From Mytilus californianus (Eukaryota): a DNA stretch of 64,000 nt. Of this stretch, positions 10,507 to 34,744 are shown piece by piece. Numbering within the stretch: the stretch's first letter is position 1; every line of letters starts with the position of its first letter. A program made the translations under genes and the position numbers. The notes below the pieces were generated by a model that saw nothing but the letters and a program-made list of their open reading frames with translations, did not search any database and was not told the origin of the DNA. The stretch spans positions 1,054,001 through 1,118,000 of the forward strand of contig NW_026262702.1 of NCBI RefSeq assembly GCF_021869535.1, given 5' to 3'.

Positions 10507-10804
10507 CTATAATTTTGTTACAACATTATTGTCATTAACTAACATATTCATGTCTGAACCATTTGTTGTTTGTACTTTTGGAATTGTGATAAATGTCGAA
10601 ACGTGGCCGTCTCGTGATTTTTCATACGAAATAGAAGCAGTGTCATTCTCTGCAACACCACTATCGGAATCTTTATTGTCCGGTTCTTGTTCAAACAATG
10701 AATATCGCATATTTACTTCTGACATCTCATCGCTAGTGGGCCGCATATAATATTCCTCTTTGTTTCTAAGTTCTACTTTATCCTCAGGCTTTCTGTCAGG
10801 TGGC
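10507..10804 (-). CDS. CTLD-WSC receptor exon 10: cytoplasmic tail
   Basis: Acceptor tattttag|G, phase 2 (AG+G=R). Reads PPDRKPEDKVELRNKEEYYMRP...NNVVTKL and ends at TAG. Confidence 0.85.
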
Positions 10805-12054: not shown

Positions 12055-12142
12055 CTTTGTCCACATGCCACGTGACAGATGATAGTACCAATGACCAGAA
12101 GGGTAGGTAGCACTACCGCAAACACTATACCTACAGTTGCAC
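12055..12142 (-). CDS. CTLD-WSC receptor exon 9: transmembrane helix
   Basis: ttcgttcag|GT GCA... gives GATVGIVFAVVLPTLLVIGTIICHVACGQ; donor AAG|GTTTGT, phase 1 to 2, compatible with both neighbours. Confidence 0.85.
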
Positions 12143-13201
12143 CTGAACGAAAAAAAAGAGGAAAAATAATAGACACATGTTTCGCATAGCACACGAAGAC
12201 ATTACAACACTACACTTCTGTAAACAAACATTAAATAGATGAAGGCACATGGGAGCAAACAAATAGTATAATATAATCATTGTAAGGTACACTATACAAT
12301 GAAACGTTCTAATATAATAATTGTTAAATGAGACAACTTTCCATTAAAACCCAATCTACAAATATCTTCATAAATGTACTGCTATTGAATTCCCGTACAC
12401 TAATTCGCCGATATTTTCCCGTATGCGGTGACCTCTCGTTAGAACTTATAACGTGCACTGGAAGGTAAATAGTAATAACTGAATCTTAAAGAACAAATTT
12501 AATACAACAAATCATTTAGCAAATATTAAGAAAAAGTTAAATTAAAAAATGGGAACGCATGTAAAATAAAAAAAAATATCATGGATCTATCAATTCACTT
12601 ACAACTCTGTGTTGATTTTTTATCAATGTCACGATCAAGTAAACTTGGGCAACAAACTCGAAAATTAATTAGCTTTCGAAGTTGCGATCAACAATCACTG
12701 AATGAAATATTATTTGTCGCTAATACGTTATAGATTCGTAATAAATATAAAAAAAAAAACGTGATTGATTGCTTGGTCGGGTTGTTGTCTCTTTGACACA
12801 TTCCCCATTTCCATTCAGTATTTTATACAGGACTTAGTTTAGTATCGATGCATGCAATGGCTCATTACTTTCGATAACATTAAAATTCCCATAAAATTGT
12901 TTTATATTATTTTAAATGTAATTTTTATTATATTTATATTTATACTTTGAAAATATAATACAAAATGTAAATCAACATTTTTATTTTCACGCTGCAGGTT
13001 GTACAAGGTTTACCTATTCAGTAATCATGATGTGGAAATGATATTTGAAAATAAATTTCTCTGAAGATGAACGTTACGTTAATGTTATTACTATCACTGA
13101 GTCGATACCTCTGCAGGTGGACTGATAGTCCCCGAGGGTATCACCAATCCAGTAGCCATTACTTCGGTACTGGCATGAAAATACGGTTTTTGTGTCATTA
13201 A

Positions 13202-14788
13202 GGCCCCGTTCACACTAGGACATTTAGATCGATTTAAGCTAGATCGGTTCACTTTAGATCGATTTAAGGGCCAATGTGAACGCGTAGGATCGATCTTCAA
13301 TCGGTCTAAACTAAAATACCAAAAGAGGTAGTTTAGTTTGAATCGATCTAAAGTGAACCGATCTTTCTTTAAATGTGAACGCAGAGATCGGTTTAAACTA
13401 GTACGATTGAATCGAAAATAATGTATGCGCATGTATAGCGGCACAACTATATCAATGGTTCGTTGTTTAACTCATATTTCTCTGTTAACAGACCGTTGTG
13501 TACATGCACGTAAAAACAAACTGAAAACATGTTGTCTTCGCCGTAGCATAAATTTGCGAAATCTGTGTCTTCTTTTTTAAGTTTTTTTTTTTCTTTTCAG
13601 GAACCGCAGTATTTCGTCGTGTTGTAACTTCGTTGCTACAGTCTTTTGTTTCAAAATCAAAGAAAACTGCAAGAATATTCTTTACAAAGCACAAAAATGT
13701 CAGTATTCACCTCAAAAGCTAACAAAACCTTTAAACAGACTTATTAGGAAGGGATATAGTTACGATACTGTTGTCAGGTCATTAAAGATTGCATATTTTG
13801 GCTTTAATATTGATTCACTTATAGGGTCTTTGCATCGGAATTAAACATATTTATTCTAAAACCAGTTGTTGGCATGACACGGGTTATGTTCTTCTCACAT
13901 ATATTTTATGATGGTATAATACTAAACCCCTAACAGGAGGGATTGTGCCTGATATTCATATGATGAAGACATAATCTTTCAATCAGTTTAATTGAGGTCT
14001 GGAGCTGGCATGTCAGTAACTGCTAGTAGTCTGTTGTTATTTATGTATTATTGTCATTTTTTTTATTTTATTTTGTTTCCTATTCTGACATCGGACTCGG
14101 ACTTCTTTTAAACTGAGTTTTACTGTGCGTACTGTTGTACGTTTGTTTTTTCTACATTGGCTAGAGGTATAGGGGGAGGAGACTTGGCAGCCCTGAAGTT
14201 GAGATCTCAAAAACATGTTTAACCCCGCCGCATTTTTGCGCCTGTCCCAAGTCAGGAGCCTCTGGCCTTTGTTAGTCTTGTATCATTTTTAATTTTAGTT
14301 TCTTGTGTATAATTTGGAGTTTAGTATGACGTCCATTATCACTGAACTAGTATACATATTTGTTTAGGGGTCAGCTGAAGGACGCCTCCGAGTGCGGGAG
14401 TTTCTCGCTGTGTTGAAGACCCATTGGTGGCCTTCGGCTGTTGTCTGCTATATGGTCGGGTTGTTGTCTCTTTGACACATTCCCCATTTCCATTCTCAAT
14501 TTTAAGAACACCAGTATCAAAATTCATCCAATTTTTTTTTCAAGTGTGTGTATCAGTGTATCAACACATCAATTTGATAAATTAGTTCTATTTATACACA
14601 ATGTTTACAGTTTTACGGGTAATAAGGTCAGATCAATTGCATTTTTAATTGTAGTGTGAACGCACTGGTTCAGATTAGACCGATAGAGATCGATCGTTAT
14701 GATTAAAGATAATGTGAACGCTAACTGGTTTTATTTAGATCGATTCAAATTAGATCGATTAAAGAAAAATGCTAGTGTGAACGGGGTC
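13202..14788. mobile_element. PIF/Harbinger-like non-autonomous element with a nested Penelope-like fragment
   Basis: 17-bp TIRs GGCCCCGTTCACACTAG / CTAGTGTGAACGGGGTC (16/17 match); TAA TSD at 13199-13201 and 14789-14791; subterminal AGATCGAT/GTGAACG motifs at both ends. Confidence 0.85.
13684..14504 (+). mobile_element. 5'-truncated Penelope-like element (family 1), 3' end
   Basis: Matches the last ~45 codons (KAQKC..SPQKLTKPLNRLI.KGYSY.TVVRSLK.AYFG) and the 3' tail of the element at 25450-26790, ending ...CCCCATTTCCATTCTCAATTTTA. Confidence 0.8.
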
Positions 14789-14937
14789 TAAGATTTGCTG
14801 TTACAAAATTTTGGAATTATATCTTCCTAATGCAAAACTCCTTGCCCGGCTTTGGCTATACTTTTTGTCCTTTTTTGTTTATAAGCTCTTCTTTATTTTA
14901 ATAAGCTTTGGATTTTCAACAAATATTGTGGCCTCGA

Positions 14938-14981
14938 GCATCACTGAAGAGACATTTTTTATCGAAATTCGCATCTGGTGT
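14938..14981 (+). ncRNA. Minimal type I hammerhead ribozyme motif, family 2 (degenerate)
   Basis: GCATCA-CTGAAGA-GAC..ATC-GAAA-TTCGCAT-C-TGGTGT. Stem I pairs, the core CUGANGA/GAAA is intact, and stems II and III carry mismatches. Confidence 0.6.
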
Positions 14982-15789
14982 AGAAAAGTTGGTACCGTTA
15001 CTGTTATTTCAGTAATTGATTACGCCAGTTCAAAAACACAGCGACAACACGTACATGTATGCTACCGGAGATTCATTACTTTTGGGGGATACCAGTTTTC
15101 GTGGATTTCATGGATACAGGTGAACCACGAATTTAAATGTTCAACGAAGTACAAACTGCCTAAAAGCTTGAATGCAGACCTTTTTAAAACCATGAAATCA
15201 AATATCCTCGAAAATACAATTAGTCTTTAATTCACGAAAATAAGTCAAGGAAATAACAGTCACACACGTAGTTGTGGTATCGAGAAAGTGGCGATCGAAA
15301 CGATGGCCACGTTGTATTATGGTTCGTAAAAAAATACGGAGGTCCAGATTTTCATCACTAATTGATAAAGACAAAAAAAAACCCACCTAATTATATGATT
15401 GTCTGTTCAAAGTCTGAAAATGGTAAATGTGTTTTCTATGATCTGAAAACTTTCTACTTGACGCTGTAAATAATTAAATTATTCAACCAATTTAACATCA
15501 TCGTCAACATTTTGAAAAATTACGCAATATGAAAAAAATAAAGCGAATCGTACTGTATTAAACACAACAGCATAAAAAACAAAAACAAAACCAAAAAAAT
15601 AATACAAAAAAAAACAAACAAAAAAAACACATATGTTTTTTGTTATTTTAACAACTTTATGTTCATGGAACGCTGACGTAAAAAAAAACAACAAAAACAC
15701 CGTCATATGTTGTGTCTGACTATGTTTAAAGCCAAAAACAAATAAATTAAATAAATCACACATTTCGGGAAGTTTCATTTTTAATATAC

Positions 15790-15975
15790 CTGCGCTAATG
15801 TCATCATTATTATCGACTAACTTCTTTGGTGGTAATGTTCCTCTTGCAGGCGTTGTTGAATCAGAAGATTTTGGTTGCGTTGTTGCCTCTTCTGTTGTTA
15901 ACGGCTCTGTACTTATTGCTGTAGTATGGCCTGGTGGATATACATAACAATCGGAGGACATAACGTCTTCTGTAT
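15790..15975 (-). CDS. CTLD-WSC receptor exon 8: Thr/Ser/Pro-rich stalk
   Basis: ttatcag|AT ACA gives DTEDVMSSDCYVYPPGHTTAISTEPLTTEEATTQPKSSDSTTPARG...DDISA; donor CAG|GTATAT, 186 nt, phase 1-1. Confidence 0.85.
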
Positions 15976-16039
15976 CTGATAAAATATTGAGAAATGTATG
16001 ATTATTTATATGCATATCCTATTTACATGGTTTGATATG

Positions 16040-16320
16040 TATAGTTATATATTTTTTTAAAGAGAGTCGAAAGATACCAAAGGGAAATTCAAACTCATTA
16101 GTCGAAAATAAACTGAAACGCCATGGCAAAATACGAAAAAGACCAAAAAAACAAGCAACGGTATAAAAAACACAATATAGAAAACTTATTATAAGACTGA
16201 GCAATACGAACCTCAACAAAAACCGGATGTGATCTCAGGTGTTCTGGAAGGGTACTCAGATCTTGCTCCACATGTGGCACCCGTTGTGTTGCTCATGCAT
16301 GTAAGTACAAACCCGGTATA
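16040..16320. repeat. Dispersed repeat family 'GGGTGCCACATGTGGAGCAAGATCTG...' (probable retroelement end)
   Basis: Related copies at about 1955-2170, 42340-42500 and 45690-45910. It is the source of spurious ORFs such as MPHVEQDLSTLPEHLR. Confidence 0.6.
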
Positions 16321-16705
16321 GTCCAAATATTTTTACCATGAACTTAATTAATTCTTAGCATATTTGAATCGCAAAATTTAAGTGTATTGCTGTTAACGTA
16401 AATGCGTACGAGACCATCGATAATCACATTTCTCTAAAAAATCATTGATTAAAGATTTGAAGATGCCGAAAAAATCGAAAAGACAAACAAAAGAAGAATA
16501 TTAGACCTGTTGATAAAACTGAAGTAAGCAATCAAATCAATACATATCTCTTATTAATTCTATCTGTTGTTAACTTTAATTAAAATTACTATTGATTTTT
16601 CTCCCTTTGTTGCTAATTTTCCACTTTAAAGCAAATTTTGTAGTTAATAAAAATAACTTTTTAACACCCGGTTATATCTATGAAAACTTATTTACTGTTT
16701 CTTAC

Positions 16706-16822
16706 CTAATTCGCATACAAATGGTAGTTGCGCTGTACAATTTAAGTTACTGTCTATTTTCAAAACACCAGCAGTGAGCATCCCATGAAAACAAGAAGCT
16801 GTAGATACTGATGACTCTTCCT
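16706..16822 (-). CDS. CTLD-WSC receptor exon 7: C-terminal half of lectin-like domain 2
   Basis: tttaacag|AG gives EEESSVSTASCFHGMLTAGVLKIDSNLNCTAQLPFVCEL; donor TAG|GTAAGA, phase 1-1. C...LPFVCE is the typical CTLD beta5 ending. Not in the ORF track. Confidence 0.85.
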
Positions 16823-17086
16823 CTGTTAAAGAAAAAAGTATACATTTTCATAAATGACATCTGAATTGCTTTAAAATAATAAAAATGATTGCACCTAAGG
16901 AAGTAATATTTCGTATCTCTTTTTATTCATGATAGACAGCTCCTCGCGCAAGTGCAGGTTTAAAAGAAACTGACTAAAGGGATTTGGAATAGAAAAGGAT
17001 TTTTCAAGGCATATATCTGAGTTTATCTTTAACTTATATCTACATATGACCAATAGCTGCGTTCTAAAGATATTGTGTCATAAAAA

Positions 17087-17557
17087 TAAAATTGAGAATG
17101 GAAATGGGGAATGTGTCAAAGAGACAACAACCCGACCATAGAGCAGACAACAGCCGAAGGCCACCAATGGGCCTTCAATGCAGCGAGAAACTCCCGCACC
17201 CGGGGGCGTCCTTCAGCTGGCCCCTAAACAAATATGTATGCTAGTTCAGTGATAATGGACATCATACTAAACTCCAAATTATACACAGGAAACTATAATC
17301 AAAAATGATACAAGACTAACAAAGGCCAGAGGCTCCTGACTTGGGACAGGCGTAAAAATGCGGCGGGGTTAAACATGTTTTTTGAAATCTCAACCCTCCC
17401 CCTATACCTCTAGCCAATGTAGAAAAAACAAACGCACAACAGTACGCACAGTAAAACTCAGTATAAGAGAAGTCAGAGTCCGATGTCAGAATAGGAAACA
17501 AAAGAAAATAAACAAAATGACAATAATACATAAATAACAACAGACTACTAGCAGTTA
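17087..17557 (-). mobile_element. Penelope-like family 1 3'-end fragment
   Basis: Same tail as 13684-14504. Further partial copies at about 12767-12825, 17853-18050, 45415-45525 and 60573-60729. Confidence 0.75.
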
Positions 17558-18061
17558 TGTTTTATACAGCAATACTGATGCTGTTATTGAATCCACACTC
17601 AATTTGTGGGTGAAGCATGAATAGAATGAGATTCAATAACAGCATCAGTATTGCTGTATAAAACATTTTGTGTGAAAATATCTTTAGAACACAGCTATTG
17701 GTCATATGTAGATATAAGGGAGACAATTTCAATCTATGACAAGTTGAGCAATTTGTATTCATTTACTTAAAAAAGGAATGTAAACACATAAAGCAAACGT
17801 GTAAAAGAGAGGCGAATGGTACCAAAGGAATATTTAACCTCATAATATTTGTAAGACTAACAAAGATTCTCCCGACTTGGGACAGGCGTAAAAATGCGGC
17901 GGGGTTAAACATGTTTTGTGAGATCTCAACCCTTCCCCTTTACCTCTAACAAATGGAGAATAAACCAACACACAGCAATACGCACAGTAAAACTCAATTT
18001 AAAAGAAGTCCGAGTCCGATGTCAGAATAGGTAACAAAATAAATTAAAACAAGGTATATTA

Positions 18062-18329
18062 CAGCCGATTTCAATGAGTGTGTAGGCAAAGGTAATAATA
18101 TCTTTGGTTAGCTTGCTTGCTAGCTGAACTGTGGTCATTGTTAGGTTAGGTAAACAACCCTCCTTTAAGAGTAGACTAGTCCGACAGATAACCGATCTAT
18201 CTGTCTATAGGACTAGGCTACTTCGAACGGAGGGTAGTATACCTTACCTAACAATGACTTCACGGTTCAGCTAGCAAGCAAGCTGACCAAAGATATTACC
18301 TTTAGCTTCACACTCATTGAAATCGGCTG
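18062..18329. mobile_element. 268-bp fold-back MITE (Tc1/mariner-like ends)
   Basis: Long imperfect TIRs (~110 bp) CAGCCGATTTCAATGAGTGTG... / ...CACACTCATTGAAATCGGCTG, flanked by TA on both sides. Confidence 0.85.
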
Positions 18330-18772
18330 TAATACTACGAAAAACTCATTAAAGTTTCCAGACTTAAAATTATCTACATAAGTATCATCAGTGACACTAT
18401 AATCAAAATTTGCAAAACGTTTTTATACTTTTGTCTTTGATAGGTTTTGTTTTAATTCTGCTTCCTACGATTACAAAAACAAGATGAAATATCAACCCAT
18501 ATGTTGTCGATAAAAAATATCCAACATTTTGATGATATTTTCTTCCTTGTATTTCGGTATTTGGAATACAAGGAAGATATGAGGTATATATCAACGAAAC
18601 AGCAACCTGACACTACCCATATAAAACAGTATAAAAAAATAACAAATGAAAAGCCCTTAAGTGGACAACAATCAATCAAATACAAATGTTTTTGTCATAC
18701 ATTCTCCTTTACAAATGAAACAGTATGGAATCATGTGACTATAATGTACTCTTACACGTAACGGACATTCAC

Positions 18773-18952
18773 CTTTCACAACTTTAGTTCTTTTTCGCCT
18801 ATAAAGACCTATCCAAAACGGGGCTCTGCTTGTTGTGTTGACACATTCTAGATCGTTGATTGTACCAGCTAAGAGAAAAGATTGATAATCGGACCAGCAA
18901 GCTTCTTTTCCTTCATTCCAATATCTATTGTCTTCTATCTCGCTTTTGTCAT
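18773..18952 (-). CDS. CTLD-WSC receptor exon 6: N-terminal half of lectin-like domain 2
   Basis: tttttggtag|AT GAC gives DKSEIEDNRYWNEGKEACWSDYQSFLLAG...RAPFWIGLYRRKRTKVVK; donor AAG|GTGAAT, 180 nt, phase 1-1. Has the W..G...C helix and the FWIGL motif. Confidence 0.85.
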
Positions 18953-19518
18953 CTACCAAAAAGATGAGTAAACTAGAAGCAGAACTTTAATTTTCAATTG
19001 AAAATCACGCATATTTTACATTATATTTTTAAACGATGTTTTTTAGAAAGTGTGATCTTTTTTTTTTATACTTTTCTCAAACGGGCCTACCGTTTTGCAT
19101 TTTCATTCAGACGAACTCGCTGAACTAAACAACAAAAGTTAAACACTTGCATTTTTAAATACTGTAAAATAATTCACAGATAAAATGCTAAGTTAAATAC
19201 AATTAAAATTAAATTAAAGAGTTAAAACAAAACAATATAAAACAATAATTGCTATTCATAAAGTTGTTAAAAGTATGACATAAGTCCGTAAATATACGAT
19301 GTAGAAACTGGACACATATGTTAACAAAATAACTGCGACTGACATGCAAAACTTTTAAACCCATAATGCCAAATGGACGAAGTGACAAATTAGATAGAAA
19401 ATTGTAGATATTATGCACTATACCAATCATTTGTATTTGGAAAAAGAAATGAGTATTACAAGGAACTCTGCAATATGTTACATGATAGTCATTTGGAAAA
19501 AAAGTATACATACAAATT

Positions 19519-19709
19519 ACGTACTGCAAGTCGTCGGTAGTGATTGGTTAAAAACAGTATGCATACAAATTACGTACTGCAAGTCGTCGGTAGTGATTGG
19601 TTAAAAACAGTATGCATACAAATTACGTACTGCAAGTCGTCGGTAGTGATTGGTTAAAAAAAGTATGCATATAAATACGTACTGCAAGTCGTCGGTAGTG
19701 ATTGGTTAC
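19519..19709. repeat. 53-bp tandem repeat that duplicates the exon-5 end and its splice donor
   Basis: ACGTACTGCAAGTCGTCGGTAGTGATTGGTTA at 19519, 19572, 19625 and 19677 (periods 53, 53, 52). The last copy overlaps exon 5. Confidence 0.95.
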
Positions 19710-19817
19710 AGGAATACCCATAGTATTGCCATCCTGAGTTGGTGCACTCCACACAACCACACATTATAGAGTTTTTGTTTGGCTCATCATCTCGGTCAAG
19801 CACTAGATTATTGGACA
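19683..19817 (-). CDS. CTLD-WSC receptor exon 5: C-terminal half of lectin domain 1 (EPN)
   Basis: tttactag|TG gives VSNNLVLDRDDEPNKNSIMCGCVECTNSGWQYYGYSCNQSLPTTC; donor GCA|GTACGT, 135 nt, phase 1-1. Confidence 0.8.
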
Positions 19818-20504
19818 CTAGTAAATAATAAATGATAACATTTACACCGTAGTTGTAAGTTTAATATCACTTTTAAACAATCAATTGAAGTACAGTTTAC
19901 ATCGACTTTATTTTACGAAATATGATGCAGAAAAAAGTTATGAAAAAGCTCTCTTTTTGAAAAATTTCAATATAACGGAAGTAATTAATATGCTGTTATG
20001 CATCGCAACTATAAAACTATAAAATCAAAACGCGCACTTAAGGATGTTCGCTGCTCAGTTTCAAAATAATAAACTTTTGAAAAGACCGTTGTACATTGAT
20101 AGTATATAAATAACGGAACTTAAAAAGCAGAAAAAATGAAGGGGAACTGTCCTTGTTTTTTTTTTTAATATAAGCAATTGAAAATTTGGCGAGAAATAGT
20201 TCTCTCTAGATTTTTTATACATTTAACACTGGCACCCTTTTACTTTCAAAAACTATGAAAAAAAAATAAGGATCTTATAAGTTTTCAAAATTGGCTTTTT
20301 AAACAATATATTATAAAACTACGAAAAGAAAAGTAGGGGTTAGCAGCAAACATTTTAATTGGCACTACATGCATAAAAGTAGAGGATTCCAAATATCTGG
20401 CAAAAAGTATAAAACAAGAGTAGCCACCATCATTTAAATGAAAACGATGTTATGCTATGTGATACGGCAAGTCGTAAGTATATGTATTATGTAGATCTAT
20501 TTAC

Positions 20505-20649
20505 CTTTCTTATAAACAGTTATATACCCATTGCCACCACAAGAATCTTGCATATTTTCGTCACATGTCTTGTTACACATTGAATCATTTACTGTACTTT
20601 GATCTGTTTCCCATGCATAATTATCAGGCAAACAGAAACAATTGTTATC
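20505..20649 (-). CDS. CTLD-WSC receptor exon 4: second half of the WSC domain
   Basis: cctgtttgtag|GAT gives DNNCFCLPDNYAWETDQSTVNDSMCNKTCDENMQDSCGGNGYITVYKK; donor AAG|GTAAAT, phase 0 to 1. The C.C / C...C / CGG / VY pattern is that of WSC domains. Confidence 0.9.
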
Positions 20650-20829
20650 CTACAAACAGGAAAATACTTTTTAAAACTCTTTTCACATGTACCTTTAACG
20701 CGTGACCATATTCGACCACCAAGACGGATGAAATGAGTTATGTAAGGACTGCTCACCCCGGCTTGAATTTTGGGTTATCAATGCTCCTTAACTCCGTACT
20801 TTATTAGTCCTTTTAACTTTTTAATTCGA

Positions 20830-20873
20830 GCGTCACTGATGAGTTTTTTGTAGATGAAACGCGCGTCTGGCGT
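20830..20873 (+). ncRNA. Minimal type I hammerhead ribozyme motif, family 1
   Basis: GCGTCA-CTGATGA-GTT.TTTTGTA.GAT-GAAA-CGCGCGT-C-TGGCGT. Core intact, palindromic stem III (ACGCGCGT), GUC cleavage triplet; stem II is weakened by two C>T changes. Confidence 0.75.
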
Positions 20874-23844
20874 ACAAAAATATAAGCCTCAGTGTATATA
20901 AAGTGCGAATCCAGTTAGTTCATTTTCACTGTCGTATGCAAGTATGTCTATTGTAGAATAAAGGATGATGGGAAAAACTGCGTTTGTTTACTTTTTGAAA
21001 ATACAAAATAATTGATTTGAATGTATGTTTTAACACAATTTCATTAGAATATAACTTTTTAATGTATAATAACAGAATTAAAGTCTTAAAAGTGTAATTA
21101 AAGCTGCTGAATTCATAATATTGATCACTGAATGCGATTCATTTTAACTATAAATACGATGAACATTATCACGGTTAGTGCGATCATTTCTGATGTGGAA
21201 TTTTTGGAGGTGCGATGAATTTTCATTGCTGTTTTATATGATAATTCGACATGCAACAACTGAAAATAGTCTTTTAATGACTTTAATATTGATGATATTT
21301 ACAATTTGAAATGCAAGCTAGTCGTAGATGCTTATACACGGGTATGACCAACGTATTGTTGATTCCGGACGTTGTGCGTTGATTTTGTTTTCTGTACGTT
21401 CGTTTCGTGTTTTCGTCATAGTTCTGTGCCGTTCGTTAGTAAAGCATCGAAAACATAATTAGCTGTTTCTATTGAAATACCTATCTTTTTTTTTTGTTAG
21501 CAAGCATTTGCAACTACTAAAACTATTTGACATTTCTATCATTTCATATTATAAATCAAAACAACCTGCATTTTGTATTTGTTTGATGTGAAACAGAACT
21601 TACTGGAACTAGAGAAGCCCACTCATCAGGAGCACCTGATTGCAATCCAGTTTCTTAGAAATCCAGTATTTTGATCTTGAGGTCAAAGGTCAAGACTATG
21701 CTCTATTTGTAGTTTAATCAAGTTTTGATTATACAGAGTGTTTTTTTCGCGATGTTTTCAAGTAAATCAAAGACCTGTGTATTTAAAATAATCACATGGT
21801 GTTCATGTAATATAAATAATGTATAATGCTGTCAGGAGCAGTAAACTTTGTTTTCATAAACATTCAATACTTAACTGAACAGTACGTCAATTAGTCTTTG
21901 GTGAAAATAATAGGACGGTCTACTCTACAAACATCGTTTTGCGATGCAGTGATTAACATTCGGAATTAACTGTACGGCGGTTATACCCCGTGGTATAGAA
22001 CCATTTAAACATATAACTATAAACTGTATTCAATATATCCTTGAATTCTTACAATTACGTATTTGCTTATTTGTAACAACGATTTATAAGAAATTCAAAC
22101 ATAAATTAAGATGACTAGATTGTAGGTCGAACTTTCTTTACCGTATAAATTTTATCTTACATATAGATCTTGATCTGGACAAAAATTAGAGAAAATAGAA
22201 TTGACTTTTTTTTTAACCAAGAAATGCTATTTTACGGAATTTATTGATATAATAACTCAGACTTTCACTCACAAAGTATGCATATATAATCAATCCTTCT
22301 GACTTCATAAATTTTGTTAGAGAGTCGGCTGAATTAAAACTTTATATGATGAAATTAATTAATTTCCTTCTGTGAAAATGCATCGCATGTACAATAGAAA
22401 TGAATCGCCCCTACAGTGAAAATGAAAGTCTAGTATCATTATGAATCGCATAACGAAAACAGCATAGTGGAATTTAATGCAATATCAACAACCTGAATAA
22501 CAAAACCTGTTTTAAGTTATACAACATTAATAATTATGTTAAAAGGTACATTTTTCTGCAAATGAAACTTAACACGCTCTGTTCGTGAACTATTCTTAAT
22601 ATTTATCTATTTGTGTATCAATTTTACACCCGGGTGGCTGTAGGCGCGATGAAAACCCGTCCGCTTCTCATACCTATATCATGAATTTATAAAAACAGTA
22701 CACGTTACATATTATTTCTTATTTTATTAAAAAATCATGAATTTGTCGTCTGTTTATTTATCATCCTGCATTAGAAATTCATAACGGATACAGTAAAAAT
22801 GATATTCTAGGATTCGCACATTATATTCACCGAGCCTGAATTCTTTGATGAGTTTATTTAAGTTTGGTTTGCATTACATTGTAGATTTATGTAAGTCTAT
22901 CTCTTCAATGATACCAGGCTTATAGTTTGGTATGAAAGACGCGCGTTTCGTCTACAATTCGTCAGTAATTAAAACTCTTTTTTTTAAGTTTTATTTAGGA
23001 ATAAATTATAACAGATTTATCTATGATCTTTTGGTGCAGTTCTTAATGACGAGCTATTAATGAAGCCTTTTGTGAAAAGTCGCTGATGCATTATTACCTT
23101 CGTTTTATGACGTTTTAAGTTAGGTGAGTATTTTGCAATAAATATTTTTTAAACATATTTTAAGACTTTACCTTAAAACAGGTAGAAGTAAAGATATGTT
23201 GTATAATTGCCAATGAGAGAAATTATATATACTAGAGACCAAATGATGTAGATTTTAGCAACTATAGGCCACCGTACGGCATTCAACAATGAGCAAAACT
23301 CATAGCGTATAGTCAGTTATAAAAGGTCCCGACATGACAAAATGTGAAATAATTCAAACGAAAAACCAACGGCCTGATTTATGACAAAATAATAAACGAT
23401 AAACAAATATGACATACTGGCTCCTGACTGGAACTAGCTCATAAAGAATGTGACGCGGTAAAACATGTATGTGAGCGATCAACCCTCCCCTAACCTTGGA
23501 CAGTGGTGTAGCAGAACAGAATACGATCAGTTGGAAATGACTTGACACATCATCCGATCGGAACGACGTACAAATAAAACAATTAACACAAAAACAAAAG
23601 AAACAAATTGTCGATATAAGAGTACTTGCAGTTACTGAAAGCTAGTTTAAAGGCAATAAATGATAAAATAATTTCACACAGACTAAAGTTTTTAACAACA
23701 TTTGATATACATGAGATCAAAAGTTTTGGAAACAAAATACAGAAAACGTTTCAGAGTTTCAAAACAAAACGATCCTTAATCTAACATCCAAAACAGTCTG
23801 AAGCTAACATTACCAGGAGGAGGTAGTTGAAACTTCTGTTTTAA

Positions 23845-24118
23845 GGTGGTACCCAACACCTTGACTAATATTAATTTGGCTCGTTTAATTTTCATAAAAT
23901 TTTGACAAAATGTTTACTTTGACCCTTTGACAAAAATATAAAAATTTCAAAACATTTGAACCAACCACTTTATCAGAAAAATTTCATTGGTTATATAGCA
24001 GTTTGACAAACACTAATTTTGATCATTGAGAAGCTTGATATTTCCTTAACAATACAACGTAATTAAAACGTTTAGCTGATTTTTACAGAGTTATCTCCCT
24101 GTAGTGTTAGGTACCACT
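23845..24118. mobile_element. 274-bp MITE with TTAA TSD (Kolobok-like ends)
   Basis: TTAA|GGTGGTACC ... GGTACCACT|TTAA. Purine-purine start and TTAA TSD fit Kolobok better than piggyBac. Confidence 0.7.
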
Positions 24119-25449
24119 TTAATATAAATACATTATTTGTAAACTAAAGTTTTCTGTTTAGATGTGTTTTGTTATTCAAGAACTGGCATTGGGTGGATGG
24201 TCACTTTTGATTGTGACATTTAACCTTAAGGGGAACCGTTAGAGTTGTAGTTCATAGAAAATATAAAAGACGAATCAAAACTAGAATTCATGGCAACACA
24301 TTAAAAGATATATTAAACATACAGGAAAACACGAGGAGCCATTCAGATCAACAGAAAATACAACGTTTGGACAATACAAACTGAACATGCTTGCAACTGA
24401 TTTAAACAAGAAAAGATCTAATTTTTCGGTATTATCATGGACTCAAAATTACTAACAATAGAAACGTGTGGATTGTTTTGTACACTTCAATAACCATGCA
24501 ACAAAATAAAACAAGTTTACCATGAAATAATCACATTTTCATCACGATGTATATACACTTCATATATCTGCCTCGGCATAAAAGAACTCATAAAGGGATA
24601 AAAGAATGGACTTACTTTACACAAAAAGTCAATTTAAATGTATCACAATAATAATTATAATCATAATAATAATAATCACTATTATTTTGGAGTTATTGTG
24701 TTGTTTTTTATTTTCCTTTCGATTTTTTTTTTGCCTGTTTTTAATATTACTAGTATTATTAATGCTATTGTTGTTGTTTTTAAAGTTTGCCAGAAGGTCA
24801 GATACATTAACGAATCGTTTTGTCAACTGCGATAGGTTTTTTAGTAAGATGTGGGAAATATCAAGGGAAAACAAATTAAATCATTTTGTATATAAATCGT
24901 TTTCTTAATTATTTGAAAAGGATCTTAACTTGCATTTCGACACTTTATATTTTACTTTAAACACCCGTTAAACAACATTTATAATATGGATGAACATATT
25001 TGCAATTCAAATGAGGATTGTGATATGTAATTTTGAACTACTTTGTACAATTAAAAGATACATCATATATGGAAATACGAAGCATGTCTTTTTATGAGAC
25101 AAACTTAAGCAAACACGTTATTTGATAAGTGAGAAGAACTGAAATTATATTCTTATTGCACATCATTTCAAGTTCTATCATTTGTACAGTTTCATCTATA
25201 GGTGAAATGAAAGCTTCCGTCAAGATATGGTTTTGTATGAACATTGGTATATTTACATCATTGTTTTACAATATAGCATAACGGATTTACTAGCACATCA
25301 TTTATATTTTATTCAAGAATGCACCCATCTATAAACGACAAGAACGCCAAATGTACCGAACTAAAAAAGTAGCTTCCAAAATCAATAAGTCTATTTTTAC
25401 AAAAAAAAACTGTGAAGCAGTATATGTACTTTGCTTAAAAAATGAGTCA

Positions 25450-26790
25450 ATAAAATTGAGAATGGAAATGGGGAATGTGTCAAAGAGACCAAAGAGCAGA
25501 AAACAGCCGAAGGCCACTAATGGGTCTTCAACACAGCGAGAAAATCCCGCACCCGGAGTCGGGCAGCTGAAGCCCGTAAATAAAAATGTGTACTAGTTCA
25601 GTGAAAATGGACGTCATACTAAACTCCAAAACATATAAATGAACTAAAATTAAAAAACATACAAGACTAACAAAGGCCAGAGGATCCTGACTCGGGACAG
25701 GCGCAAAAATGCGGCGGGGTTAAACATGTTTTGTGAGATCTCAACACTCCCCCTATCAGTCTAGCCAATGTAGAATAAACAAAAACACAGCAATATGCAC
25801 AGTAAAACTCAGTTTAAAAGAAGTCCGAGTCCGATGTCAGAATAGGTAACAAAAGAAACTAAGCAAAATGACAATGATACATAAATTAACAAAGGACTAC
25901 TAGCAGTTACTGACATGCCAGCTCCAGACTTCAGTTAAACTGATTGAAAGATTATGACGTCATCATATGAAAATCAAGCACAATCCATCCTGTTAGGGGT
26001 TTAGTATCATACCATCATAAAATATATGAGAAGAACATAACCCGTATCATGCCAACAACTGGTTTTTAGAACAAATGTGTATATTTCCGATGAAAAGACC
26101 CTATGAGTGAATCAATATCAATACCAAAATATGCCATCTTCAATGACCTGACAACAGTTTCGTAACTATATCCCTTCTGAATAAGTCTGTTTAAAGGTTT
26201 GGTTAGCTTTTGAGGTGAATGCCGACATTTTTGTGCTTTGTTAGGAATATTACCATAAAAGATTGGATGTGAAATACCTGAACGTATAAGATGTCTGCAT
26301 GTTGATTTATATTTACGAATGATGTCCTTGTACCGATGATAAAATTTGGGAAATGTTTTGACTAGTTTGTGATATCGAAAACCCTGGTGTAATAATTTTT
26401 CAGTAATACAAAGATTTCTGTCGTTAAAATCAAATACAGCATTACATACACGAGCGAATCGAACAAGTTGAGATATATAAACACCATAAGATGGCGACAA
26501 GGGAAAGTCACCATATAAAAATGGATAATTAACAATAGGAAATGAAAAATCATCTCTTTTATCATAAATTTTGGTTTTAAGCTTCCCGTTTAAGATATAG
26601 ATATCAAGATCCAGGAAAGGGCAGTGTTCATTGTTAGAATTAGCTTTATTTAAAGTCAGTTCAGCAGGATAAATCTCTTTAGTGTACATATTGAACTCGT
26701 CATTATTGAGAGCCAATTTATTATATATCATCCAAATATCTAAAAGTGTTATTAAATTTTTGTATCAGATCAAGTTTGCTTATTTGCTAC
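25450..26790 (-). mobile_element. Penelope-like retroelement family 1: 5'-truncated RT C-terminus plus 3' tail
   Basis: RT motif FNNTFRYLDDI (YLDD at 26727-26738) is followed by a 7-nt frameshifting insertion. ORF 26066..26731 then gives PFLDL..IYDKRDDFSFPIVNYPFL..SYGVYISQLVRFAR, typical of PLE RT thumb regions. No GIY-YIG follows the RT. Confidence 0.85.
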
Positions 26791-27013
26791 AAAAATATTG
26801 CCTATAACATCAATGTTACTTTTGTTAACTTCCCAGTAAAGATAACACTAGATATTACTAACTAATCAAATCATAGGACGGTTAACAAAAGGATGACTGA
26901 AAATCTTGTGTGACCTGAACAAAAATGCTTGCCTTATATTCACCTCAACTCTGGTGATAAAAGACAAAAGCAATTAATCTCATTTGCATAGATTGATATT
27001 CAAAACTACATCA

Positions 27014-27355
27014 ATGTGATGACTGAACGGCAGTCGGATGATGAATGATCCATGTGATGACTGAACGGCAGTCGGATGATGAATGATCCATGTGATGACT
27101 GAACGGCAGTCGGATGATGATTGATCCATGTGATGACTGAACGGCAGTCGGATGATTATTGATCCATGTGATGACTGAACGGCAGTCGGATGATGATTGA
27201 TCCATGTGATGACTGAATGGCAGTCGGATGATGATTGATACATGTGATGACTGAACTGCAGTCGGATGATGATTGATCCATGTGATGACTGAACCGCAGT
27301 CGGATGATGATTGATCCATGTGATGACTGAACCGCAGTCGGATGATGAATGATCC
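27014..27355. repeat. 38-bp minisatellite, 9 copies
   Basis: Unit ATGTGATGACTGAACGGCAGTCGGATGATGA(A/T)TGATCC with few substitutions. Confidence 0.95.
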
Positions 27356-27986
27356 ATACAAAGGATAACAGAAATTCAAAAAATAGCGGACACTGCAACA
27401 AACTCCTCCGACAAAATACACATACACACAATGACAAAAACGAACAACACGTGGTCCAGATAACCTTACTTGACACAGCCACCTAATGTATATGTGTGTA
27501 AAACAAGTGTATTGTGCGCAAATCTGCTTATGTATTAAAATTAAAAAAAAGCTTGCATAGGATTCAAGACGTATAAAAGCTTTTATAATGATTTGATAGA
27601 ATAGCATCAGCAATGTGTTTAAAACCTAAAATATGTATCCTTAGAGACCAAACATACCATTTAAATCAATTGTAGTAGGTAGCCTACGGAAGCCCATAGG
27701 GGACCTAAAAAAATAATAGTATATCGTTATCTCAATATATATATCGTTCTTTTGATATAATTAAATCGTTATCTCGATATATTAAGATCGTCATCTCGAT
27801 TTTTATATCGTTATACCGATATAATTATATCGTTATATCGATATAGTTAAATTCGTGGCTTCCGTAGTAGCCATCCATTAAAATCTTAAAATGTTAATTT
27901 TTTTATTTCGACGAGAGAATAAATATTAAAAGGACTATACATTTATAGATTATTTTATACAAAATGCAATAAATAGGAGTACTCAC

Positions 27987-28084
27987 CATCATTCCGAAGA
28001 ACATATCACAATTACCAACGCAAGTTCCTGGGCTGTCACTGTTGTACTGGCTAACAATGCTAGACGTATTCATCTGAGAACAAC
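27987..28084 (-). CDS. CTLD-WSC receptor exon 3: first half of the WSC domain
   Basis: ttttttaag|GT TGT gives GCSQMNTSSIVSQYNSDSPGTCVGNCDMFFGMM; donor ATG|GTGAGT, phase 1 to 0. Not in the ORF track. Confidence 0.85.
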
Positions 28085-28699
28085 CTTAAAAAATCAGAGA
28101 TATGATTGCAATTTTAGGCAAAGATAAGTAATACTTTTACTTATGATAAATTAAGACAAGATAAAAAAAAACCTTCTACGAGTTATCAAACATTTAATAG
28201 TAGATAATCTGTAATTTATCCTTATAACCTTATAATTGAGATTATCAAATTTAAATATAAATCAAACATGTATTGCAAAAAAGTATACAAACGTACCGAA
28301 CTTCAAGGTAAATTCAAAAAGTGGGACGTCCATAAAAATTGACTAAATCATATGTATTCAATCAACGGAATGAGTGAAAAATAACTGTCATATTCCTGAC
28401 TTGGAAAATGCATTTTCCGAAGAAAATGTTGGGTTACATGGTTTTATAGCCAGCTAAACCTCGCACTAGTATGACAGTTGTTTATAGTTCCGTTATATTG
28501 ACAGAATTGGATGAGCAACCCAAACAGACATAATTATAGGTAAATGTAACAATAATTGCGATCCAACAGCCAAAATTGTGTAATCATACATACAAACTAA
28601 CTTAAAAATTCGAACAAACATACAAATAAATCTGACAAAGACGCCAACAAAAACATTTTTGTATTGATTGTATATTGAAAAATACACGAATACAATTTT

Positions 28700-29450
28700 T
28701 TATGTAGTTGATAGTACCTACCGTATTAAGTAAAATATAAACAGAAGGGTAAACAAAAACCTGTACAGAAAATAAAGACTCACAAATTCAGCACCAAAAA
28801 CCTGTAACTCAAAACCAGCTTGTATTATTTGTGTAGTAGACACTGAATATTTATCTATTAGGTCTTGGTACTTTCCGATGAACTTTTTGAGAAAAAGGAC
28901 GAGACGTTTTTTGACAAAACCCTGGCTTATTAATTTTTGCTTATACACCGGTGACGTTTTACAAAGTCTGAGTAGCAACTGCAAGTTCTTGAATATCAAG
29001 TTGCGAAAGGTTTACTTCATATGTGGTTGAAGTTGGTTTGTTGCTGTTAACGTGAGGAAAATTAATAATTTCAAAATTGAAATCGTCTCGTTTGTCATAG
29101 ATTCTGGTACTGAGATGACCGCTGGTTGTCAAATCGAGGTAAATGTGTGGAAATGAGGCGGAGGAGCTGTACCTGTGGTTTCTTTGATTTCTAGTTCAGG
29201 GGGATGTATTAATGGGACCCAATCAGAAAAGTTTGGACTGTTAACGGTAAGAACATCATCAATATATCTGTATTTGAAATTAAATGATCTTGCTTCTTTG
29301 ATCTTCTTTTTTTTCACAAGTGTCTGAAGGAACTCGGACTCATGTGAAAAAAAGAAAAGGTCGAGCAGGAGAGATGCACAGGTGGTTCCCATAGGAATAC
29401 CGACAACCTGCTGGAAAACAAATTAAACAAATATGTTGTCAATGAAAAAC
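28700..29450 (-). mobile_element. Penelope-like retroelement family 2, degraded RT fragment
   Basis: FQQVVGIPMGTTCASLL..LF, FKYRYIDDVL and YPPELEIKETT-like motifs (ORF 29129..29392), plus the C-terminal QGF...L.KF.GKY.DL..KY (ORF 28718..28999), joined across frameshifts. Confidence 0.8.
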
Positions 29451-29521
29451 TCTAGCATACTTATATACTTTCTCACATGAATTGATAATTTTAAAAATGC
29501 ATCTTCAAAACATCTACATAC

Positions 29522-29716
29522 CCATTATCTGTATCCACGGTGTAAATTCATCGTATGTTCCAACCCAAAAGTTTGTATTTTGAGGAAATGAACAGTTATA
29601 AAGCTGTTGTTGAAAAGAACCATTAACTAAATCACCGCCTCGTTGTAAGCAATCATCTCTTGCAGCATCCCAGTTTAATTGAGTAGAATTATATCTATAC
29701 ACCAATATGCATGAAT
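29522..29716 (-). CDS. CTLD-WSC receptor exon 2: N-terminal half of lectin domain 1
   Basis: ttttctacag|AT TCA gives SCILVYRYNSTQLNWDAARDDCLQRGGDLV...NFWVGTYDEFTPWIQIM; donor TGG|GTATGT, 195 nt, phase 1-1. Has the NW.AAR..C...GG.L and FWVG CTLD motifs. Confidence 0.9.
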
Positions 29717-32260
29717 CTGTAGAAAAAGGTAAAGACAATGGTAATGATAGTTATTTCAGCATGTTTGTCTCTCAAAGGGTTAAAGTTTTAATCTGTATCG
29801 ACTACATGAGTTGCTAGACTACAAAATCAAATCTGAAAGCAAAACGATTAGCTTGAACGTAAACTCTTTGAACCACGGACTGTAGTTTTCGGTTTTTTTT
29901 GGGGGGGTGGTGGCATATTTCTAGGGCTTTTTTTCCTAGACCAGGAATATTCGAATTATACGATTCCCCTTCATTTATCACCACGCTTACAAACAAGAAA
30001 ACTATTTTGGAAAATATTTCAAATTTTATGCAGTAATCAATTAAAGAAACTGATGAACAATTTAAATATACGGAATTCAAATAGGAAAGCTATAATACTA
30101 TCCCAAGCCCATTTGCTTAACTTGGTAAATACAATACAAACTAGTTCTTTTAAAGCATTCCTCTACTATCAATTTACTCGAATAGACTTTTGTCCGTTCC
30201 TTAACTTATGATAGGTGTCTTAGGGGTCAAAAGCAAATCCGATAAATGTTCATTTAAATGTGATTATAATATACTAAATGCAAAATGAAAAAAAAGGAAT
30301 TAAAAAGAAGTTAAATGCACCACCCCTGTGAGAGTATTTGAGATATTGGTTCGTTATGGTTGAAAGTTGTCATCCAGATGTTAGATGTTGTATTTCTTTT
30401 GTCACGCAGTATTTTTAATTGAGATCATGCAAATAATAACTATAAACACAAAAAGAACTGAAAAGAACACGCGAACCAATGAAAGCTTGTTGTTTATGTC
30501 TATGCATATGTCATACAACAGGTTATTTGTTACTGCAACTATTTAAAGTCTATTGTTAGCTTTAGAAAGATTTTTAATGATGATAGATAGTTTGATAAAT
30601 TTAAACTTCCTGGGAATCTTCAATTATTTACAAATTACTAATAATGTTGTTATTTCAGTTATATCTTATCAGTAATAAATCAACTAACTGCGATAGCACA
30701 AAAACAATATTGTTTATCATAATTATCCAAGATGCAAACAAATAATAACAATAAAAAATAATATCATTTTCATGTACCATTACAACATTACTGTAGCTTC
30801 ATATGCAAAATCAAACAATTTTGTCGCACAATTACTACTCAGACAAAACTTGAATTGTTTAATCAGAAGTCATTTACTAATGCATTTGTTTTTGGTCATT
30901 CCAATACGTTTACACCGTCAATTCGTATGAACGCGCTAAGTTTTTTGATTTTTGCATTCTGTACGTATGATCACGTGAATTAAGCTGCAACCTTCGGAAA
31001 TTTCCTTTTTAATGATATAGTATAGTGTTATTTTTTTACCTGCTATTGGCGTCTCTACTGATCAATCAATTGAAAATGTGTGATTTGTTTTGGTTTAACT
31101 AAGTTCAAAAAATAATCGTCTTCATTTCGTTATAGACAATGATATAATATACCATATAATTTTAAAACCATTGTTTTAAGAACAATAGTCATAAAATTAT
31201 AGTATACTTTTATACTCGTTGTTTATGATCTTTCTTTTTTTCTATTTATCCCTTTTTATTTCTTTCCATCGACTGAAGCTAGAAGGTAATACATTCATGT
31301 AAGTCAGACTCAAGGACGAAGTAATAAACTGTGATATATGCAATTATTAAATGTTCTAGAAATTGTAGCAAGCCAATCTGGGAGCTAAAAGGCAATGAAA
31401 TATACGTGAAACATACGTTTGAGTGAAAGTGACAAAAGGGAGGTACAATAAAGTTAAGCTTTGAGTAAAAAAAATGTGTCGCAGTGCTTAAAACTTGAAT
31501 GATAAAGGTTCTTCTTCCGAATTTTACTATATAGTATGTGAGGTTTTGTAATTCACTTTTGAAAATTCCTAAAACTTAGCCCAAGTAAATGTAGAAATGA
31601 CAAATCGTTGTACCTTGTGGGACGATTCACCAGTCAACCTTTTTCATAATAAGCATGTTTTCACAAATTGAAAAAAAAAAAATCATAAAAGATTTTCGAA
31701 TTCTCTACATGATAAGACAAATCTGCTAAAAGTTCCTCTGATATTTTTAAGGACTATCATGTCTTTATTGAAGAATTAATACATTTTATTGGATCTTATT
31801 TTTTTATTTTTACGCATGAATGAAAGGAAATTTTGGTTATACGTATAATGAGACAGCAACCCAAAGTCAAAATGACCACAAGACATCATGAGCCTAAGAC
31901 AATAGACAAGTTTCAAGCTTTAAATCGTCATAATTCTATTAAAGTTTAGAATAGATTAAACAGAAATGATCAAACTCTGTCATCAACATAAAACTACCCA
32001 AATAATAATAAAAAAGAACATCAAAATATGAAATAAGGACACTACTGGTTGAGGTTCCTGATTATGGACTGACATAAATATGTGTCGGAGTTAAGGACTT
32101 TTATTTTTATCTTGACCCTACTGCTTTTTATCTTGATCAGTGCATTAAAAAAAATACACAAAAGAACCTACAAAAAAATCTGAAATAACGATATAATAGT
32201 CAACAACAAAAAATGACAAACAAAAAATTAATGATAAACTATCTTATGCCGTATGTTTAC

Positions 32261-32351
32261 TCGTCACAATAACTGGAAGTAAGCGCAAAGTACTTAAGCT
32301 GATGATAAGTAAATGCCTTTCAGTACCTTGATATCGGTTGCTGAACTTCAT
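32261..32351 (-). CDS. CTLD-WSC receptor putative exon 1 (signal peptide)
   Basis: ATG MKFSNRYQGTERHLLIISLSTLRLLPVIVT plus 1 nt, donor GA|GTAAAC. The phase-1 end fits exon 2. The hydrophobic core is only moderate, so this exon is tentative. Confidence 0.45.
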
Positions 32352-34744
32352 AGAAGATTTCCTTTGTCATAAACACCAGCAACTTTATTAAAAGTACAAG
32401 AATGAAAACATGATCTGGAGCAATGTCCATCTAAAATGTTAAGAAAAACAAAAACAAAAAATATTTTTGTATTGTTCAAAAAATGAAAACAACACGTTAT
32501 AAATTTCATGCGCCCGAAGCGCTTTTTTGAATTTACCTTCACAAGGAACACTCGCAGCCGAATATTTGAAAGCCAAGGTTGTATAAGAACCGAAACAGTC
32601 GAAGAGCTATATGACCAAAAAAGAAATAAATTGATGAATAAATGTCCACCCAAAAATTAAAGAAGCATCGATTGAATACCAACAAATAAACTGCCTTTTA
32701 TCAATAAGGCTGTAAAGTCAAAGAGAAAATTTTCAGGGAAATACCTTAATTTTGTAAGCTTTATGAACAATATTGCTGTAAAAAAACGGATACAAATTAC
32801 CACTTTTAATAAATATCTAGCGTGACTTCTTTCTTCATTGTATTTGCACTGATAGCATTCGTATAAAACGAAAAAAATATTCTTCGATAAAATTTCATTT
32901 AAGTTTTTTAAATGATTTAATCGCAATGAACATGAATGTTAAAAACAAATGTTTAAAAAAAGAATGTTGTACACACCTCTATAATTTTAGTTCGTTTAAT
33001 CAACAATGAAAAGAAATTATCAAATTAATTTTTTTGCACTTAATAACCCAACTGCTTCAATGCGTGCTAGTTTCTTATCTTAAATTTTGTTTCGCTTTGT
33101 TCATTATATAATGTTGTCCCGATGTATAGTCATCTTGTTTCACTCCTACCTTGATAATATCATATTCCGTTTCGTACCTCACCCATTAATTGTCTTAAAA
33201 TCCATTTATTAATAAATTGAATTTATATTATCATGATTTTTCATCCATTCATATAATTTGTTAATTTTTAAGTACTCACAGTTTTCAAAGAAGAAAAATA
33301 CGACAATGATAAAACACAGCTTGCAATTCATTCTTCCTATGCAAATATAACTATTTTGTATATAAAACTTTATTTAACACGGAAGTTTTAACACTTCAAT
33401 TGCTTTAGGAGTATCAAATTTCAATATATATTGTGTACCCGTTAAATGTCTTTCAGCTAAAAAATGTATCACATAATGGATGCATGGGTGGTTTTCCAAA
33501 TGAACTTAAAAACAGTACTTCATTTATTATATATTGGCATTTCATAGTACACACAAAGGATAACAGTAATAAGCGACAATACCTTATTTCTCCAGGTGCA
33601 TAGGCACCGAACCCGCAACTTTCGCAAATGAAAAAGGAAAAGAATTTCTAGATATAATGCACAGAAACAATGGGAACGAAGCCTTCTATTGTATCGACAC
33701 GGACGTTATTGAAACAACATTTGCAAAAAGGCAGCTTGGAACACTTTAACGGATCCACCTAAATTGTGAACGAATTTCAAAGTATACCATACTAATATTT
33801 TCCGTATAATTTTAACAATTTTTCGGGAAAATAGTGTATATACCACGCAAGAATCAATATGTCCATGCTTCCGGACTTACCATACACCTTCGGATATTTG
33901 CCTAATGCTGGTGACTGATTTGTAAGTAATCAAGTAACAAAGTCTTCCTCTGTCCCATTAAGAAAGACTAGTAAATGGTTAGCTTAAATTTTGATATTAC
34001 GAAAAAAATTTCACAAAATGTTATACACGTTACTTATACATAAATACTGGACCTCATTTTGGTTGTTATTGAACGACCATCGATTACGATAAACGTCAAA
34101 ACTACTAACGAGTCATATGGCTGATGGCAAATGCAAAATATTAAAAGAAACTTCACGTTAAGAAACTAAGTATATCCAATCCATCTGTACATCATTTCAC
34201 TCAGTGCAAATGTTATTGTTTAGTTTTATATTTATGGAGGTTGTTGAGAGTGTGGTATGTATTGCTAAAGGTTATCTTATTGAAGTACATATATTTTACG
34301 GTCTTAAATTTCAATTTGATTTGAATGATTCAAATTGGTCAAACAAAATAGATGAAATTACTCATTGTATGAACAAAATTAGCTTAGAGGTCAAAATAAA
34401 AATTCGTGTGCAAAAACTGTTTAAAAGAAGATTACAGAATTCAACAAAATGTTATTTGAAGACAACTCAGCCACAATATTCCGGTATAACTGTTTGAACA
34501 AACAAATATTTAGAAATGTCCACATATGAGGCAAGTGGGTAGCCTTAATACTGAAACCACTGTGGTGTGTATATTAAGAAAATCATTTTGGGAGTATGCA
34601 GTATACACTTTGATGTATGTAGAAATAGACAACTTGTTATCAATACAACAAACTTCTTTTCATCACGCTAAATTGCAGTCGATGAAAAAAATCACCTGGT
34701 TTTATTCGCTCCAATAACAACCCAAACTCACTTCTAATAAGTCC

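Follow-up and report, generated by a model that had tools for sequence, protein, structure and literature searches.

A probable WSC-like module within a C-type lectin-like domain of a Mytilus membrane protein

The Mytilus californianus gene LOC127703774 offers a likely case of one protein domain lodged within another. The gene lies on the minus strand of a 64-kb window (64,000 nucleotides, nt; positions 1,054,001 to 1,118,000 of contig NW_026262702.1), and its ten exons span positions 10507-33331 in the numbering of that window, which is used below. The likely explanation of its sequence is that it specifies an expressed type I membrane glycoprotein of Mytilus in which the first of two C-type lectin-like domains (CTLD1) is discontinuous, with a shuffled, eight-cysteine WSC-like module situated between its halves. 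Exon 2 would supply beta1-alpha1-alpha2-beta2 up to a WIQIMG motif, which takes the WxWxDG position of ordinary CTLDs, and exon 5 would supply the end of the long loop (EPN, or EPD) and beta3 to beta5 with the C2, C3 and C4 cysteines. Exons 3 and 4 carry the module.

The protein (P0001) was retrieved by an exhaustive protein search with exon 2 as query. It is the NCBI product XP_052063815.1, isoform X1, labelled "uncharacterized", and the spliced translation of exons 2 to 5 is identical to its residues 19-208. A model of 510 amino acids had been put forward in a first-pass annotation of this DNA; the annotated isoform X1 has 497. The order of parts is a signal peptide, CTLD1, a compact second domain (CTLD2), a stalk rich in Thr, Ser and Pro, a transmembrane helix and a 92-amino-acid tail.

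Exon structure and transcription

Exons 2 to 5 lie where the first-pass annotation had placed them, as borne out by splice sites, an open frame and RNA. Exon 2 (29522..29716) encodes the amino-terminal half of CTLD1, i.e. beta1, alpha1 (WDAARDDC), alpha2, the FWVG strand and TPWIQIMG, and ends in phase 1. Exon 3 (27987..28084; 98 nt, phase 1 to 0), defined by its splice sites and an RNA contig, encodes the first part of the module (GC...C...C..FFGMM), and exon 4 (20505..20649; 145 nt, phase 0 to 1), defined by an RNA joint, encodes the second (CFC...C...C...CGG...VY). Exon 5 (19683..19817; phase 1 to 1) is the proposed carboxy-terminal half of CTLD1, a 45-residue block with five cysteines that displays EPN (codons at 19777-19785), the beta3 Cys, the beta4 W, C3 and LP..C4. 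All are on the minus strand; their AG/GT borders are canonical, and the reading frame is open over every join.

The Logan contig L001 (1,990 nt, intron-free), which encodes the 494-amino-acid protein P0108, maps to exon 1, an alternative exon 1b and exons 2 to 10 in order, and the breaks in its alignment coincide exactly with the predicted splice sites. The contigs that encode P0108 and a further protein, P0109, measure 1,990 and 1,707 nt, too little to contain any of the introns. Joints in RNA reads and contigs of M. californianus were examined over positions 14701-20700, where 20505/19817, 19683/18952, 18773/16822 and 16706/15975 occur in stranded raw RNA reads and in contigs of three runs. 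At 20650, the exon 4 acceptor, a loose contig end matches the end of exon 3 in reverse complement, and one at 15788, in exon 8, runs on into the start of exon 9. RNA-type runs of M. californianus contain about 0.20 of the words sampled from 19600-20700 and 0.11-0.12 of those from 27950-29750, which matches the expectation from exons alone. No joint that skips exons 3 and 4 is listed among the RNA joints, at a depth of 3-6x. The chain of exon 2, exons 3 and 4, and exon 5 is real and transcribed.

The end of exon 5 overlaps a 53-bp tandem repeat of four copies (19497..19708, 96% matches; Tandem Repeats Finder), which copies the last 26 nt of the exon, the GT donor and 27 nt of intron. Only the first of these donors, at 19683, is used in RNA, and read-through beyond exon 5 would meet a stop in about 10 codons.

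The module of exons 3 and 4

The module comprises residues 83-163, 81 residues with eight cysteines. Read directly, it has these cysteines together with FxG, CxC(G), CxxxC and CGG...VY in the order found in WSC domains. Among 24,736 Pfam models WSC (PF01822) is the sole meaningful family for the module; in all four Mytilus species considered below it scores 19.0-21.9 bits (E 1.6e-3 to 2e-4), and the match covers profile positions 15-82 of 82, of which exon 4 accounts for positions 48-82. Sequence matches in the PDB are to Kremen-1 WSC domains alone (5FWS and related entries); six cysteines, FxGM, CxC and CGG...(I/V)x(V/F)(Y/F) align, with an E value of about 4 that is not significant by itself. 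The nearest cluster in a language-model atlas is also the WSC family, at a score of 0.87, a range counted as a lead only. The module is probably a WSC domain, and its WSC-like nature, proposed in the first-pass annotation, is supported by the Pfam, Kremen-1 and atlas results alike.

The two halves of the lectin domain

The amino-terminal half poses little difficulty. Against 60 CTLDs exon 2 gives an hhalign probability of 98.8% (E 1e-16); a custom CTLD hidden Markov model scores it at 39-50 bits, and the Pfam Lectin_C profile, over its positions 2-48, at 18.3 bits. Judged by its sequence, exon 2 is unambiguously the first half of a CTLD, with beta1, the alpha1 pattern WxxAxxxC, alpha2 and the WIGL strand. 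A diverged homologue of exon 2 is present in Logan run SRR19987513 (P0006, on L002:190-426), with 56% amino-acid and 73% nucleotide identity; its exon ends in TPWIQIVG, and the GT donor that follows falls at the codon position used in exon 2. The homologue is a paralogue, or else the orthologue of a more distant mytilid.

Does exon 5 complete the domain? When the 81 residues are removed in silico, exons 2 and 5 align with ordinary CTLDs as single HMMER domains that span the junction, with WIQIM followed by VSNNLVLDRDDEPN opposite WIDGWPVTF-TYWDDDEPS; on this alignment the long loop would receive the module directly behind its WxWxDG position. A profile built from 36 ordinary CTLDs, chosen by their fit to the composite of exons 2 and 5, places its positions 6-81 on residues 23-94 and its positions 80-120 on residues 172-213 of the intact protein, and gives exon 5 a score of 9.1 bits (p 8e-5). 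The test was repeated with a profile of 80 CTLDs that had been chosen solely by their match to exon 2. Here exon 5 alone scores 8.9 bits over positions 100-139, from EPN to the last Cys, a value reached by 13 of 2000 composition-preserving shuffles (p about 0.007), and the carboxy-terminal half of CTLD2 (exon 7), which is undisputed and contiguous, scores 8.4 bits. On the same profile the 81-residue insert scores 1.5 bits, which is at the level of shuffles (555 of 1000 reach it). Exons 5 and 7 also have a C-xxx-LP-xx-C ending in common, their best local alignment being SCNQSLPTTC with NCTAQLPFVC.

The junction alignment and the placement of both pieces on the profiles agree with the earlier proposal that CTLD1 is split into exons 2 and 5 around the module. 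Nesting is thus backed by sequence, and the corresponding fold is a presumed one. The proposal that standard scans overlook the arrangement fared well also: Pfam returns no match at cut-off, and the precomputed Pfam field for the protein is empty.

The calcium site

Five residues are the canonical ligands of Ca2+ site 2: E and N from EPN, a Glu that precedes the beta3 Cys, and N and D from WND. CTLD1 resembles the EPN domains of the mannose-binding-protein type in its alpha1 WxxAxxxC, its WIG strand, the order of C1 to C4 and, in M. californianus, the EPN itself. It differs from them in that WND is replaced by WQY or WLY, Cys or Gly is found where the Glu ahead of the beta3 Cys should be, and the 81-residue module takes the place of the first half of the long loop. 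Moreover, EPN is found in M. californianus only; M. coruscus, M. trossulus and M. edulis have EPD. Two of the five canonical ligands are left, E and N or E and D. The view taken in the first-pass annotation, that a mannose/glucose-type Ca2+ site lies next to the WSC domain, is not supported.

It appears more likely that the module replaces the CTLD loop site than that it adds a second one. The module would project from the long-loop face of the CTLD, the usual place of sugar binding, and, because Ca2+ site 2 is degenerate, probably takes over the binding of ligand (glycan), with the CTLD as scaffold. The fuller proposal, that a whole WSC module was shuffled in as a two-exon cassette and replaces the sugar-binding loop so that the CTLD presents another glycan binder, is offered tentatively and falls somewhat short of likely.

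Origin and conservation

Exons 3 and 4 together make up 243 nt, or 81 codons, and form a phase 1-1 cassette. Exons 2 and 6, which encode the amino-terminal halves of CTLD1 and CTLD2, each stop in phase 1 some 11-13 residues past WIG/WVG, and exons 5 and 7 are both phase 1-1. The intron of CTLD1 equivalent to the one that splits CTLD2 is thus the one that contains exons 3 and 4. A phase 1-1 pair of 243 nt in such an intron is the mark expected of a module that was shuffled into a pre-existing intron. Exon shuffling within the Mytilus lineage is the most likely origin of the cassette, which occupies a phase-1 intron of the type that also splits CTLD2.

Orthologues with 76-91% identity are present in M. 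coruscus (UniProt A0A6J8DXZ2), M. trossulus and M. edulis; the layout is kept in the four species, and the M. trossulus locus has a matching layout of ten exons. The insert carries 8 cysteines, exon 2 has 3 and exon 5 has 5, and all 16 are invariant in the four species. In comparison with M. trossulus, the module has a ratio of nonsynonymous to synonymous substitution rates (dN/dS) of 0.21 and the flanks (exons 2 and 5) one of 0.26, at dS values of 0.3-0.46; for the amino-terminal half of CTLD1 it is 0.16. The module is under purifying selection and is a maintained part of the protein.

Alternative explanations

A number of results speak against the nested arrangement, and they are best seen beside the alternatives that they would favour. 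Might the module be something other than a WSC domain, i.e. a cysteine-rich extension that the CTLD long loop acquired in this lineage and that resembles the WSC cysteine pattern? Its WSC score stays under the gathering cut-off of 27.8 bits in all four species, the PDB and atlas matches are of the modest kind given above, and a BLASTP comparison with the bona fide WSC domain of P0056, a protein discussed below, is not significant (E 2.2). In addition, protein sequence searches found no relative of the module beyond Mytilus: word-indexed searches, whether the query was the complete protein, the insert region or the insert by itself, gave Mytilus orthologues only, or nothing, and phmmer with the insert as query gave no match among the 103 nearest CTLD proteins. 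An AlphaFold2 model of the insert with its orthologues is of low confidence (pLDDT, the predicted local distance difference test, of 39.0). This explanation is nonetheless unlikely, as WSC is the one family that matches, and over 68 of 82 profile positions, the eight cysteines and the FxG, CxC, CxxxC and CGG...VY motifs are all in canonical order, three different methods lead to WSC, and a two-exon phase 1-1 cassette looks like a shuffled module. Faint matches in P0062, P0017, P0020 and P0033 were judged not to be WSC, and tblastn found no paralogue inside the 64-kb window. A further thought is that the cassette is optional, so that a plain-CTLD isoform with exon 2 joined in frame to exon 5 coexists with the nested form. 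Skipping of the 243-nt phase 1-1 pair preserves the frame, and a minor isoform could escape at the RNA depth available; but neither a joint between exons 2 and 5 nor a matching loose end is listed, and the module is present in all three RNA contigs, in raw reads, in both NCBI isoforms and in M. coruscus-like transcripts, which leaves this quite improbable. It is in any case compatible with a module nested in CTLD1 and is no true alternative to it.

The role of exon 5 is the other point at issue. By a tandem layout, CTLD1 would be a degenerate half-domain followed by the module, and exon 5 a cysteine-rich linker or the amino-terminal beta0-beta1 hairpin of CTLD2 (C..GW..Y...C). Consistent with this, when exon 5 alone is aligned locally by hhalign, its best match, TNSGWQYYGYSCNQ, falls on 14 amino-terminal columns of CTLDs (the GW..y..CY hairpin), yet with a probability of only 2.5%; and C208, the last Cys of exon 5, stands 12 residues before the CTLD2 W, much as C20 stands 13 before that of CTLD1, whereas C0' would be 20 residues away from W as against the canonical 10. 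Pfam Lectin_C does not match exon 5 at all, and the whole protein reaches 20.9 bits with that profile (PF00059) and residues 17-215 reach 16.3, both under the gathering cut-off of 22.6. The whole-sequence HMMER score of exons 2 and 5 is not above that of shuffles, exon 5 adding nothing to it; local hhalign alignments stop short of exon 5, neither exon 5 nor the insert finds a significant hhalign match among 60 CTLDs, pairwise similarity of exons 5 and 7 and of exons 2 and 6 is not significant (p about 0.1), and an atlas search with the exon 5 segment gave no usable match. AlphaFold2 with residues 17-215, orthologues and 36 rows of amino-terminal CTLD halves gives a pLDDT of 37.7; this and the low value for the insert are attributed to a family that is too shallow and to CTLD rows misplaced by the alignment. 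Against the tandem layout, HMMER sets exon 5 on the positions from EPN to C4 with a score like that of the carboxy-terminal half of CTLD2, exon 5 has the phases and the ending of exon 7, and a conserved amino-terminal half with its alpha1 Cys needs a beta5 partner; the layout is accordingly held to be improbable. A last possibility is that exons 2 to 4 form a whole CTLD by themselves, with YNSDSPGT for Y.NW..GEPN, AWETD for WND and SMCNKTC for the last Cys, and exon 5 is an unrelated appendix. MAFFT repeatedly set CTLD carboxy-terminal halves on the insert, and one HMMER envelope put profile positions 25-138 on residues 23-142, at low posterior probabilities. However, the insert behaves as a shuffled sequence on the CTLD profile, it costs about 8 units in global hhalign where exon 5 is neutral (71.1 vs 72.0), and its cysteine spacings fit WSC and not CTLD; this explanation is very improbable and was rejected for the shuffle-level score of the insert.

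The pseudo-match between the module and CTLD carboxy-terminal halves (residues 92-142 of P0001) is an observation in its own right: it draws global aligners and will corrupt automatic alignments of the family. MAFFT either puts such halves onto the insert or stacks fragments, and is robust only for trimmed rows of the amino-terminal half.

The remainder of the gene

The downstream parts named in the first-pass annotation, a second CTLD that lacks EPN, a mucin-like stalk and a transmembrane helix, are encoded as proposed by exons 6 and 7, exon 8 and exon 9 (all on the minus strand, like the rest of the gene). Exon 6 (18773..18952) provides the amino-terminal half of CTLD2, from RYWNEGKEAC to FWIGLYRRKRTKVVK, and ends in phase 1 at a position equivalent to the end of exon 2. 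Exon 7 (16706..16822; phase 1 to 1) provides the carboxy-terminal half, which is compact, without a long loop, and has the pattern C...NC-TAQLPFVCE. CTLD2 has no EPN and scores 20.5 bits with Pfam Lectin_C over residues 216-320. Exon 8 (15788..15975) is the stalk rich in Thr, Ser and Pro, exon 9 (12055..12142) the transmembrane helix ATVGIVFAVVLPTLLVIGTIICHVAC, and the coding part of exon 10 with its stop (10507..10804) a cytoplasmic tail that is acidic and rich in Ser and includes a YxxPhi motif, YSLF.

Exon 1 (33280..33331; nt 1-55 of L001) has the ATG and a hydrophobic signal peptide of 17 residues, MNCKLCFIIVVFFFFEN, with a phase 1 end and a GT donor. The type I layout is a reading of the sequence by eye, from this signal peptide, a hydrophobic stretch of 26 residues followed by R/K, and the tail of 92 residues. 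The protein would be a putative cell-surface recognition, adhesion or endocytic receptor, an endocytic role being considered because of the YxxPhi motif. The alternative exon 1b (32327..32430, minus strand; nt 53-157 of L001) brings in a stop 24 codons past the signal-peptide ATG, as translation of L001 indicates. Isoform X2 (P0106), which like L001 includes exon 1b, starts at the next ATG, MKFSNRYQD..., without a signal peptide. Exon 1b may be a poison exon or mark a regulatory isoform.

The introns are rich in repeats. An interspersed repeat with a aatggaaatggggaatgtgtcaaagagacaacaacccgacc core is present at 16900-17500, with similar pieces near 12800-12860, 14339-14527 and 25351-25596; RNA from it is found on both strands, up to a summed contig depth of about 28,000, and is unrelated to the 3-6x of the host gene. 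Introns 2 and 3 have reverse-transcriptase-like open reading frame fragments (29129-29392 and 26066-26731, minus strand) with YIDDVL and LDDI motifs, one of them of 221 amino acids, and these are presumably retroelement remnants. A 38-bp tandem repeat of nine copies lies at 27010-27357.

Relation to known proteins and significance

WSC domains and CTLDs occur together elsewhere. In polycystin-1 they are present as separate domains, and the Kremen WSC domain stands in series between a Kringle and a CUB domain and has a role in the binding of the Dkk/LRP6 proteins and of virus. Two proteins of about 2,400 amino acids each, P0056 (residues 1100-1500) and P0095 (1170-1570), carry F5/8-type-C, WSC and CTLD domains one after another; the WSC domain is canonical (59.8 and 51.7 bits) and is followed at once by a canonical CTLD (98 bits). 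There each domain is contiguous and well over threshold, whereas in LOC127703774 the CTLD would be broken by the module between WxWxDG and EPN. Literature searches brought up no account of a WSC domain nested within a CTLD.

The C-type lectin repertoires of bivalves are hugely expanded and are thought to give specificity to innate immunity. A role in immune recognition has been suggested for uncharacterised, bivalve-restricted proteins that combine a CTLD with a WSC domain (Saco et al., 2023; PMC10140915). The domain combinations in that survey come from standard scans, and no WSC inside a CTLD is described there, in contrast to the proposed nested layout of LOC127703774. As both of its domains are below the Pfam cut-offs, the LOC127703774 protein is probably absent from such surveys, and an architecture of this kind would go unlisted in them.

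If the nested arrangement is correct, it would be a clear case from nature of exon shuffling inserting one domain into another, and CTLD2, which retains an empty intron of equivalent position and phase, offers an internal control for the insertion. A CTLD whose long-loop site has been exchanged for a second module of carbohydrate-binding type would represent a new route of receptor diversification.

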